This document shows, piece by piece, positions 12,901-15,158 of a DNA stretch of 64,000 bases. This DNA comes from Zygnema circumcarinatum SAG 698-1b (Eukaryota > Plantae > Zygnematophyceae): positions 1,116,001-1,180,000 of the forward strand of contig CM074811.1 of assembly GCA_037447605.1 (NCBI GenBank). The letters run 5' to 3'. The notes under the pieces are model-generated. The model saw only the letters and a list, made by a program, of their open reading frames with translations. It ran no database searches and was not told the DNA's origin. The position numbers were made by a program, and so were the translations under genes. How positions within the stretch are numbered: position 1 is the first letter of the stretch; each line of letters begins with the position of its first letter.

Positions 12901-15158
12901 ATGACTGTCTATTGTATTGTTTCTACTTCTCGCTAATTCTCGGCTAAGTTGATGTTCTAAGAGCGATGCTTGGTTGGTGGATGATTGTTTCCTTCCAGAA
13001 AGGACGTAACAAAAGAGGCAGCGGATATGGTTCTCATGGATGACAATTTTGCCTCCATAGTGCTCGGAGTGGAGGAAGGACGGCTCATCTTTGACAATCT
13101 GAAAAAGACCATCTGCTATGCTCTCACTGTCAACATACCCGAGCTCATTCCCTTCCTATGCAATGTCGTACTCGGAATTCCGCTGCCCCTCTCCACAGTT
13201 TTGATGCTCGCCATCTGCCTCGGAACTGACATGTTTCCAGCCATATCATTGGCGTATGAGGAGAAGGTCAGCATCTTTGGACCTTCCACTTGTCTCACTT
13301 TCTGAAATTGGGTGCAATCACTCACCATACCATAACACATTGTGATACCCGAAGAGACTATTGAAGTTAAGTTATCATTGCAGTTGATTTCAAAGCCCCT
13401 TGACGACAGCTCCACGACCTTTAACTGAATCCCTTCCGTTTTACGTAACAGGAGGCAGACATCATGGAACGCCCGCCACGTAACGCAAAATCGGATCGTC
13501 TTGTAACTGGGCGGCTCATATTTCATGCATATCTCATAATTGGAATAGTGCAAACCTTCGCTGGGTTTTTAGCCTACATGGCTGTTCTCAACGATTACGG
13601 ATATATTCCAAGCGTACAGTCCTCTCTTTTTCCCCACTCTGTCATTGTTCTTTAAAGGCATGTTTCCTCCGCCGTCCCAAGAACTAAGCCCACCTTTTTA
13701 ACCAGCCATTTCGGCATTATGAAAACTCACCTAAGCTTGTGTTTTCTTGTTTTCCTGGCAGATATTGGTGGGAATTGATACGAACCTTGACTTTACGGCC
13801 AACTCCCTCATCTGTACCGTGGATACAAGAGGTGTTCCGGTTAAGTGTGGGTACGGTTGTGCCGCACCTGACTATGCAGCCGGACTCCCCTACACCCACG
13901 AGTATTGCTATGACGGCTGCGCTATTCCTGTGAACCCCAACATCGTCGATCCCTTCAGTGAATTCGACTACTACGGGTTCAAAGGAGTGGACTATTGCAA
14001 CCTCACCTGCTCCTCTCCTCCCTCCATGTTTGCGGGAGGAGTGCTCCCTTCCCAGTGCAGCAACGAGACTCTCAGAGACTTAGTGAGAAAGCCGATACCT
14101 TCTTCTTCTCCACTCCCTCGTCGCTCGTCTCTCTCTCTCTCTCTCTCTCCTGCCGCTGCTGTACGTAAAGAATGGGTTCTGGTGGCACTCCTGTTAGGCC
14201 TGAGTGTAGTTGTGTGGTGTTTTCCAGATTGGATTTCCCAATAGGGAGTCCCTAGGAACTCCATATGCTCCCGTGGGAGGATTTTATTGGTGGGGAGGAC
14301 GGAAGCAGCCTATGCCCAATTGGTATTATCAAGAGCAGACACTTGACTTTGCGCAGTCGGCGTACTTTTTTGCCGTTGTGGTAACGCAATGGGCGAACCT
14401 GATTCTCTGCAAAACGCGGAAGTTATCCGTCTTTGAACAGGTAAGGTTGTGGGTGAGAGAGAGAGAGAGAGAGTGAGGGGAAGGGGCAGGGAAAGGGTGG
14501 AGGGTACAAGAGAGAGAGAGAGAGGTTGACCTTGGCTCATTCTGCAATGTTATTTAATGTTGTAACCTCTCTTTCAATGCCTTGAAGGACTTCAAACCCT
14601 TCAATGCATGGTTAACCGATTTAAGGCTGCAAAGATGCTTGGTTAACCGTTCGAGGGCTACAAACCGTTCAATACTTGGTTAACCGTTTTAACTGCTATA
14701 GCCCCTCCAGCTCTTGGCTAACTGCGTGGTCGGGCTTGGGGGGTTGGGCGGGCTGCAGGGAATGCACAACTGGGTGCTGAACTTCAGTATGGTGTTCGAG
14801 ATGGGCGTGGCACTGTTCCTCCTTTACACGCCGGGAGTGCAGACGGTGTTCTCCACGCGCCCCATCCTGTCCATCTACTGGCTATGCGGGACACCCTTCA
14901 TGCTCGGAATCTTCGCAATCGGGGAAATACGGAAGAAGATCATAAGGGCCCGACCGGGTGAGTTTCTCTCTCTCTCTCTCTCTCTCTCGCGCTCGCTCTC
15001 TCTCAATCTTTGACTCTTCCCCTCACTCGCGATGCGGATGGAGTATGTCTCGAGTTGCCTAAATGCAAAATGTGAATTACTGCGAGACATCCTGAATTTG
15101 GTACTGCTGGTGTTGCATGGGTTCAGGGGGATTCCTCGACCGCTGGACTTTCTGGTGA
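6913..15158 (+). CDS. P2C-type (Na+/K+-ATPase alpha-like) P-type ATPase
   Basis: Exons 6913-7146, 8495-8554, 8670-8861, 9008-9256, 9393-9591, 9887-10095, 10278-10419, 10706-10876, 11065-11272, 11425-11641, 11854-12036, 12200-12337, 12682-12833, 12999-13266, 13452-13613, 13762-14082, 14228-14440, 14759-14957, 15127-15158. Motifs: [101 protein letters not shown], and C-terminal [12 protein letters not shown]. Confidence 0.95.
7559..7846. repeat. (CT)n microsatellite of about 290 bp in ATPase intron 1
   Basis: Direct reading. It accounts for the spurious SLSL/RERE ORFs. Confidence 0.98.

Follow-up and report, generated by a model that had tools for sequence, protein, structure and literature searches.

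A Na,K-type P-type ATPase of the alga Zygnema circumcarinatum with a rebuilt ion pocket and its apparent parallels in oomycetes

The question raised by this locus is whether a sodium-pump-like protein of a green alga, in which several ion ligands are replaced, can be a 3Na+/2K+ pump. The window is a stretch of 64,000 nucleotides from Zygnema circumcarinatum SAG 698-1b (assembly GCA_037447605.1, contig CM074811.1, positions 1,116,001 to 1,180,000 of the forward strand). It contains a multi-exon gene on the + strand that encodes a P-type ATPase of the Na,K/H,K type. According to the original prediction, three ion ligands of the animal Na+,K+-ATPase are substituted in this protein, which suggests that it is not a 3Na+/2K+ pump. 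That view gains support from the fixation of the substitutions across a whole clade, the remodelling of cation sites I and III, the recurrence of the same changes in parallel and the behaviour of S777V and D926N-type mutants of animal pumps. Judging from the residues, each cycle of this pump probably transports fewer ions than one of the textbook pump.

Residues are numbered here as in pig α1, using gapless phmmer alignments to the 1016-residue pig α1 chain 3wgu_A. Residue i of the exon encoding transmembrane segments M5 and M6 corresponds to pig i+731 and residue i of the M9–M10 exon to pig 940+i; N57 and Q54 of the M8 exon are pig 926 and 923. The numbering used in the original prediction was correct against this solved chain, and the same alignments bear out its list of kept residues (the equivalents of VPEGL, N776, E779, D808, Q923 and E954). 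The complete set of retained residues comprises E327 (in VPEGL), Y771, T774, N776, E779, D808, Q923, W924 and E954. The substitutions S775V, D804C and D926N are present exactly where they had been placed, at codons GTC 13129–13131, TGC 13216–13218 and AAC 14396–14398. All three are real, but the list was incomplete: T772A, D995G, V922T, I800M, I780L and T340A had been missed. The other pocket codons read are GCT 13120–13122 (A772), AAC 13132–13134 (N776), GAC 13228–13230 (D808), CAA 14387–14389 (Q923) and GAG 14798–14800 (E954). Spliced RNA contigs of four studies show the same letters, with no canonical S/D/D codons. The canonical ligand sets of sites I, II and III are incomplete owing to A772, V775, C804 and N926, together with G995 on the C-terminal pathway. 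The C-terminus of the protein (15129–15158) ends in ...DRWTFW, as does that of its closest relative, the transcriptome protein P0233; animal pumps end in ...KETYY and green algal ones in ...TYW or ...TFW. Together with D995G, the altered C-terminus bears on the C-terminal pathway by which Na+ site III is tuned in animal pumps.

Relatives were retrieved by an exhaustive HMMER search with the M5–M6 exon and by two word-indexed searches. Val775, Cys804 and Asn926 (V/C/N) are shared by all 11 streptophyte-algal relatives read, and such residues occur at these positions in none of 74 canonical proteins of the P2C (Na,K/H,K-ATPase) subfamily. The carriers are the proteins of Klebsormidium nitens and Mesotaenium endlicherianum, five Closterium proteins and the transcriptome proteins P0233, P0244, P0227 and P0228, with the motifs Y-A-L/I-T/A-V-N, (A/L)(I/L)-C-L-G-T-D and T-Q-W-(A/T)-N. 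A sixth Closterium protein, P0271 (NIES-65), is placed with them by the tree only, within the Closterium branch. In maximum-likelihood trees the carriers form one branch (SH-aLRT 99–100) inside a green-lineage P2C clade (100), and V/C/N, which the original prediction had suggested might mark a clade, does define one, extending from Klebsormidium to the Zygnematophyceae; by the pump tree, the alga of the window is nearest to the latter. With the set fixed across this clade, a private oddity of one genome is ruled out. A second green branch comprises canonical pumps with T772, S775, D804 and D926 (T/S/D/D) from marine prasinophytes, ulvophytes and pedinophytes, and a third comprises a type with N776K from Chlorophyceae and Trebouxiophyceae. 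No land-plant member turned up in the word-indexed search for relatives. The streptophyte clade has sixteen fixed positions at which it departs from the 74 canonical proteins; at least nine of them lie in M5, M6, M8 and M10 around the ion pocket (S768T, T772A, S775V, I780L, I800M, D804C, V922T, D926N and D995G). As read from these alignments, the substitutions belong to a wider, coordinated rebuilding whose focus is sites I and III.

Several green proteins depart from this pattern. The partial protein P0272 of Chara braunii shares C804 and M800, has M775, S776 and Q779, keeps D926 and sits on a long branch; it may be a further-derived or poorly modelled copy. The third P2C type is represented by P0256 (Chlamydomonas), P0248 (Volvox), P0243 (Micractinium), P0242 (Parachlorella) and P0275 (Picochlorum). 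It combines N776K with N324T/V, and the Chlorophyceae members are also divergent in M8, with NK(I/V)IAA in place of QWADL. The Lys of N776K occupies the position of one of the two lysines in Artemia α2KK. The statement that all Na+ ligands are conserved in CrNAK1 (PMC3355532) does not fit this alignment.

The same residues are found in oomycetes. All of the approximately 45 oomycete P2C proteins retrieved, from Pythium, Globisporangium, Phytophthora, Albugo, Lagenidium, Saprolegnia, Achlya, Thraustotheca and Aphanomyces, have YALA(A/V)NIPE, (A/L)ICLGTD and QWxN. The marine ochrophytes Triparma, Pinguiococcus, Choristocarpus and Chrysoparadoxa are canonical. The tree places oomycetes as sister to ochrophytes in a stramenopile clade (100) and streptophytes within the green clade. 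The approximately unbiased (AU) test rejects a joint clade of streptophytes and oomycetes (difference in log-likelihood 393, p = 6e-49) and a single clade of all C804 proteins (difference 523), on quick trees and with groups named after the trees had been seen. One ancient paralogue for all C804 proteins, or a transfer between oomycetes and algae, is rejected by the tree placement and the AU tests, within the same limits.

The extent of the parallelism was assessed on 275 alignment columns fixed within streptophytes, marine green algae, oomycetes and ochrophytes. Of these, 13 distinguish streptophytes from marine green algae and six distinguish oomycetes from ochrophytes; all six oomycete changes match streptophyte ones, with the same start and end residue (T340A, T772A, I780L, I800M, D804C and D926N; hypergeometric P = 3e-9). 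At position 775, streptophytes have V and oomycetes have either A or V. Most of the set is also carried by a paralogue of the freshwater sponge Ephydatia muelleri, which nests inside Metazoa, and by a ciliate-like protein that is sister to that of the ciliate Blepharisma. In Andalucia, a jakobid from soil, the residues are V775, S804 and N926. In a sign test, C804 changed together with A772 in 4/4 informative cases and with N926 in 3/3; since there are only four independent pairs, significance is out of reach and the argument rests on the column-overlap test. On this comparative evidence, the same rebuild arose independently in streptophytes and oomycetes, and partial versions of it did so in a sponge and a ciliate-like organism. 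The replacement of Asp by Cys at 804, seen in at least four lineages, needs two nucleotide changes and has yet been fixed repeatedly, suggesting a preference for Cys as such. By their general habitats, the lineages with the set live in fresh water or soil and their canonical sister groups in the sea.

In animal pumps, the side-chain ligands of site I are T772, S775 and D804, the last also serving site II; the Na+-only site III involves S775 and D926, and D995 lies on the C-terminal pathway to it (PMC10812997, PMC10756188). In the algal protein the site II set is kept (the M4 VPEGL backbone, E327, N776, E779 and D808), the site I side-chain ligands have become Ala, Val and Cys, and S775, D926 and D995 have become Val, Asn and Gly. 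The mutant S777V (rat numbering, equal to pig S775V) showed no K+ response up to 50 mM and no pump current; the affinity of site III for external Na+ fell more than 32-fold, and sites I and III were blocked (Nielsen et al. 2024, PMC10812997). Na+ was bound at site II only, with an approximately tenfold higher apparent affinity (0.049 versus 0.47 mM), and phosphorylation by ATP was intact (PMC10812997). The mutation D923N in α3, equal to rat α1 D928N and pig D926N, lowers Na+ affinity by one of the largest margins known (PMC13607240). Natural substitutions at the sites of Artemia α2KK shift the stoichiometry to 2Na+:1K+ (PMC10756188).

Because the residues required for site II are still in the pocket and those required for sites I and III are gone, the protein is rather likely to be a P2C pump that works through site II only, with one cation out and one back per ATP. 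It would pass through a normal E1/E2 phosphoenzyme cycle, but with one cation occluded per half-cycle, at site II. Per ATP, one cytoplasmic Na+ would leave (H+ may substitute) and one K+ (or H+) would return, and the resulting pump would be electroneutral or weakly electrogenic. Such a mode would resemble that of an ENA-type pump, or of a single-site H,K-ATPase of the gastric type, more than that of the 3Na+/2K+ pump. By analogy, Na+ out and K+ in would be the first choice of ions, with less certainty than attaches to the single-site mode itself. Na+ export is favoured because site II alone suffices for Na+-triggered phosphorylation and because charophytes need a Na+ extruder, the uptake of K+, phosphate and urea being Na+-coupled in Characeae (PMC4958633). 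K+ import is favoured by a second-hand report that connects a P-type ATPase of Pythium with the uptake of K+ at low K+.

Several points weigh against the single-site reading. S777V inactivates the pump in the animal backbone, which means that compensating changes must exist in the natural proteins. Residues that help build site III (Y771, T774, Q923, W924 and E954) are retained, and the Asn at 926 could still ligate Na+. As D804 is also a ligand of site II, site II itself is altered. The repeated two-step change to Cys804 hints at a specific thiol role that a single-site model does not explain, and the identities of the ions are drawn from analogy.

The assignment of the protein to its subfamily is clear in profile comparisons, for which P0233 served as a full-length stand-in (82% identical over 1077 codons). 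On NCBIfam TIGR01106 (ATPase-IIC_X-K; cut-off 946.1) this protein reaches 1095.7 bits, and it falls below the cut-offs of the SERCA, PMR1 and PMCA models (446, 473 and 382 bits versus 703, 798 and 507), of the P2D ENA model TIGR01523 (384.5 bits versus 645) and of all H+ and Mg2+ models. The M5–M6 exon of the window alone is also best on TIGR01106, with 140 bits versus 68 for SERCA. By these sequence scores, the gene encodes an α-type P2C ATPase. The H+,K+-ATPase signature, with a Lys in place of S775 and a Glu in place of D804, is absent, with Val and Cys found instead. Klebsormidium nitens P0220 is named 'Ca2+ transporting ATPase' in NCBI and UniRef and scores 1117 bits on TIGR01106 (cut-off 946); this name is wrong, since only the P2C model was passed and all Ca2+-ATPase cut-offs were failed.

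In place of the SYGQ loop that binds the β subunit, the protein has a Cys-rich ectodomain of about 150 residues between M7 and M8 (13762–14082 and 14228 to about 14330). An ectodomain with eight invariant Cys is common to all green-lineage P2C proteins, canonical ones included, and is therefore not specific to the variant with A772, V775, C804 and N926 (A/V/C/N). No match to it was found among Pfam and PDB profiles, the β subunit included; the genome was not searched for a β gene. The AlphaFold model of the ectodomain is poor (pLDDT 54). A β-subunit-like nature has been claimed for the M7–M8 insertion, and the green lineage is not known to possess a β subunit (PMC7911474).

On the + strand, at least 18 exons of the gene occupy 8495–15158, with TGA at 15156–15158 and no in-frame stops in the exon translations. 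Exons were placed using RNA-contig joints, splice sites and tblastn with P0233. The start codon and the first exon or exons upstream of 8495 were not found, the N-terminus of P0233 being too divergent for tblastn. The exons are as follows.

8495..8554, + strand, exon, N-terminal region (VEHTW...NPDL); acceptor AG, donor GTGAGT; about P0233 residues 75–94
8670..8861, + strand, exon, Cation_ATPase_N and M1; Pfam PF00690, E 1.7e-10; tblastn with P0233, 72% identity; splice sites
9008..9256, + strand, exon, M2 and start of the A domain; tblastn with P0233, 81% identity; splice sites
9393..9591, + strand, exon, A domain with TGES; tblastn, splice sites and motif; a loose RNA-contig end at 9882 reads the exon end
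9887..10095, + strand, exon, M3–M4 with NVPEGL (E327 equivalent kept); spliced contigs of four runs; motif
10278..10419, + strand, exon, end of M4 (T340A, codon 10293–10295) and DKTGT phosphorylation site; GT..AG joints 10094/10277 and 10419/10706 in four runs
10706..10876, + strand, exon, N domain; joints in four runs
11065..11272, + strand, exon, N domain; joints in four runs
11425..11641, + strand, exon, N domain (KGAPE); RNA contigs, motif
11854..12036, + strand, exon, P domain (TGDHP); RNA contigs, splice sites, motif
12200..12337, + strand, exon, P domain; RNA contigs, splice sites
12682..12833, + strand, exon, P domain; RNA contigs, splice sites, motif
12999..13266, + strand, exon, M5–M6 with A772, V775, N776, E779, L780, M800, C804 and D808; RNA contigs; 98% identical to P0233
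13452..13613, + strand, exon, M7; Pfam, RNA contigs, tblastn
13762..14082, + strand, exon, Cys-rich extracellular insertion in the M7–M8 loop (eight conserved Cys); RNA contigs; runs on into the next exon to about 14330
14228..14440, + strand, exon, end of the ectodomain and M8 with T922, Q923 and N926; RNA contigs, pig alignment
14759..14957, + strand, exon, M9–M10 with E954 kept, E953 replaced by F and D995 by G (14921–14923); Pfam, pig alignment; RNA-contig record positions leave 202 letters
15127..15158, + strand, last coding exon, followed after TGA 15156–15158 by the 3′ untranslated region; sequence; RNA contigs cover 15126–15400

The catalytic motifs TGES, DKTGT, KGAPE, TGDHP and TGDGVND are all present in the exon translations. 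Pfam domains Cation_ATPase_N and Cation_ATPase_C were found on the exons, and the PDB alignments span M5–M10. In RNA contigs from four runs of four separate studies, all introns are spliced out with GT..AG joints, and over 9850–15400 the contigs show no letter differences from the genome and no indels. A single RNA contig of 3.7 kb, from run X20, covers nearly the whole mRNA. The share of sampled words per run was 0.63 (X7), 0.61 (X8), 0.60 (X9) and 0.44 (X20), for X7–X9 approximately the exon share of the stretch searched. Compared with the coding sequence of P0233 (locus L001), the 1077 codons give 82% amino-acid identity, with a pN of 0.116 and a saturated pS of 0.81 (proportions of nonsynonymous and synonymous differences); for the M5–M6 exon, pN is 0.01 and pS 0.75. 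The low pN against the saturated pS marks the gene as under strong purifying constraint; it is an intact, expressed, working gene. A pseudogene or an assembly artefact is ruled out by the absence of stops, the identical spliced contigs in four studies and strong purifying selection.

Some transcripts and repeats of the locus deserve mention. Low-depth contigs in runs X7 and X9 have an odd AG..GC joint from 13655 to 13760, and low-depth unspliced pieces in X7 and X8 span the intron before 12682 (12308–12708); these look like minor aberrant splicing, or carry-over of pre-mRNA or DNA. A (CT)n microsatellite of about 160 copies (7535–7850) lies just upstream of the resolved exons. The intron 9591–9887 contains a degenerate G/A-rich repeat (9594–9838) with a 10-N assembly gap at 9691–9700, and short CT/TC repeats occur in introns at 10111–10191 and 14965–15004. 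Downstream, an open reading frame on the − strand (17551–17739) has the kinesin motor signature LVDLAGSER and belongs to a kinesin-like gene.

The main rival to single-site exchange, considered unlikely, is pure efflux of the ENA kind, in which one Na+ (or K+ or Li+) would leave per ATP at site II with H+ as the sole counter-ion, K+ being neither needed nor imported. In its favour, S777V pumps are wholly insensitive to K+ up to 50 mM and yet bind Na+ and are phosphorylated; all three side-chain ligands of K+ site I are gone, one of which, D804, also serves K+ site II, and charophytes require a Na+ extruder. Against this stand the second-hand report that ties the oomycete pump to K+ uptake at low K+ and the retention of E327, N776 and E779, the residues that hold the one K+ of gastric-type pumps. 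Moreover, P2D ENA pumps are already present in the green lineage (PMC3355532). A pump of divalent or soft metals (Ca2+, Mn2+ or a thiophilic metal bound through Cys804) is improbable. With E327, E779 and D808 beside an uncharged residue at 804, the pocket is reminiscent of the E/N/D site II in the Ca2+ pumps SERCA and SPCA, Cys has been selected repeatedly despite its two nucleotide changes, and the Klebsormidium protein bears a Ca2+-ATPase label. That label is automatic, however, and conflicts with the profile scores; the thiol is not obligatory, as Andalucia has Ser804 and one metagenome fragment Thr804, and the pocket offers no second Cys or His ligand.

It is very improbable that the protein is a canonical 3Na+/2K+ exchanger whose substitutions are compensated by other residues or by water-mediated coordination. 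The M5–M6 exon is indeed about 75–78% identical to animal α subunits, and Y771, T774, Q923 and E954 are retained, but S775V and D926N are each severely disruptive in animal pumps, the side-chain ligands T772, S775, D804 and D926 were lost together with D995, and the repeated evolution of the same set points to a new function rather than to drift. Least credible of all is a non-transporting derivative, whether a sensor, a scaffold or a decaying gene. S775V alone does halt cycling in animal pumps; strong purifying selection, the intact catalytic motifs, expression in four studies and conservation from Klebsormidium to the Zygnematophyceae speak against it, as does the oomycete counterpart, the most abundant membrane protein of Phytophthora zoospores.

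Single-site exchange, as preferred here, can be set beside the known pumps. The animal α subunit (pig α1, PDB 3WGU/3B8E) resembles the algal protein in the identity of the M5–M6 exon, domain order, catalytic motifs, the kept VPEGL, N776, E779, D808, Q923 and E954 and an aromatic-ended C-terminus; it lacks the algal replacements (T340A, T772A, S775V, I780L, I800M, D804C, V922T, D926N and D995G) and has the SYGQ loop where the alga has its ectodomain. Canonical green-algal P2C proteins (Ostreococcus OtNAK1, Flabellia/Udotea Q4LB56, Bryopsis and prasinophyte metagenome proteins such as P0036) share with it the green clade, the Cys-rich ectodomain with eight invariant Cys, a similar length and a ...TYW/TFW C-terminus, but they are marine and keep T772, S775, D804 and D926, whereas the freshwater or terrestrial window clade has A/V/C/N. 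The oomycete P2C proteins (Pythium, Phytophthora, including the PPTG_09633 type, Saprolegnia and Albugo) agree in T340A, T772A, S775A/V, I780L, I800M, D804C and D926N and have no β subunit; they differ in their independent origin in the stramenopile clade, a different and longer M7–M8 insertion and the retention of D995. The oomycete P2C ATPase was reportedly first cloned by Barrero-Gil et al. in 2005.

Gastric H+,K+-ATPase has a single transport site, site II, and performs 1:1 electroneutral exchange. Gastric and non-gastric H+,K+-ATPases are proposed as the working analogy for the algal pump in their use of site II, but in them a Lys at the S775 position blocks site I, 804 is Glu or Asp and the Asp at 926 is kept; the ATP4A motifs are YTLTKNIPE and FIELCTD, and the algal pocket is without a cationic residue. 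Artemia α2KK (PDB 8K1L) is likewise a natural, environment-linked change of the ion sites that lowers stoichiometry (PMC10756188). It differs in that two Asn are replaced by Lys and site III is intact, while the alga removes ligands and adds no tethered cation.

In the searchable literature, neither the streptophyte pumps nor the A/V/C/N module were found described, although the oomycete residues may have been noticed earlier by Barrero-Gil et al. in 2005. P2C pumps were proposed to have been lost with the emergence of streptophytes (Pedersen et al. 2012, PMC3355532). Na,K-type pumps in fact persist, expressed and constrained, in Klebsormidium, Chara and the Zygnematophyceae, with a rebuilt ion pocket. 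A proteome paper of 2025 (PMC12223298), which reported the abundance of the pump in Phytophthora zoospore membranes, treats it as an ordinary 3:2 Na,K-ATPase and calls its function unresolved. A broader proposal, held tentatively and at somewhat less than even confidence, is that the P2C subfamily has a second, recurrent stable design. In it, a seven-residue module (T340A, T772A, S775V/A, I780L, I800M, D804C and D926N) would erase sites I and III, and what is left would be a pump with one site, exchanging 1:1 and insensitive to voltage. On this view the design arose afresh at least four times in lineages of fresh water or soil, namely the streptophyte algae, the oomycetes, a freshwater sponge and a ciliate-like lineage. 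The forebears of land plants would have used it as the Na+ (or K+) pump that sustained the Na+-coupled nutrient uptake of charophytes, and it would later have been lost on land.

The parallel rebuilds amount to a natural, replicated experiment on how the sequence of a sodium pump encodes stoichiometry and selectivity. The residues involved (S775, D804 and D926) are those whose mutation causes human ATP1A3 disease. For the algae themselves, the pump could be the Na+ extruder behind the long-known Na+-coupled uptake of K+, phosphate and urea in charophytes.

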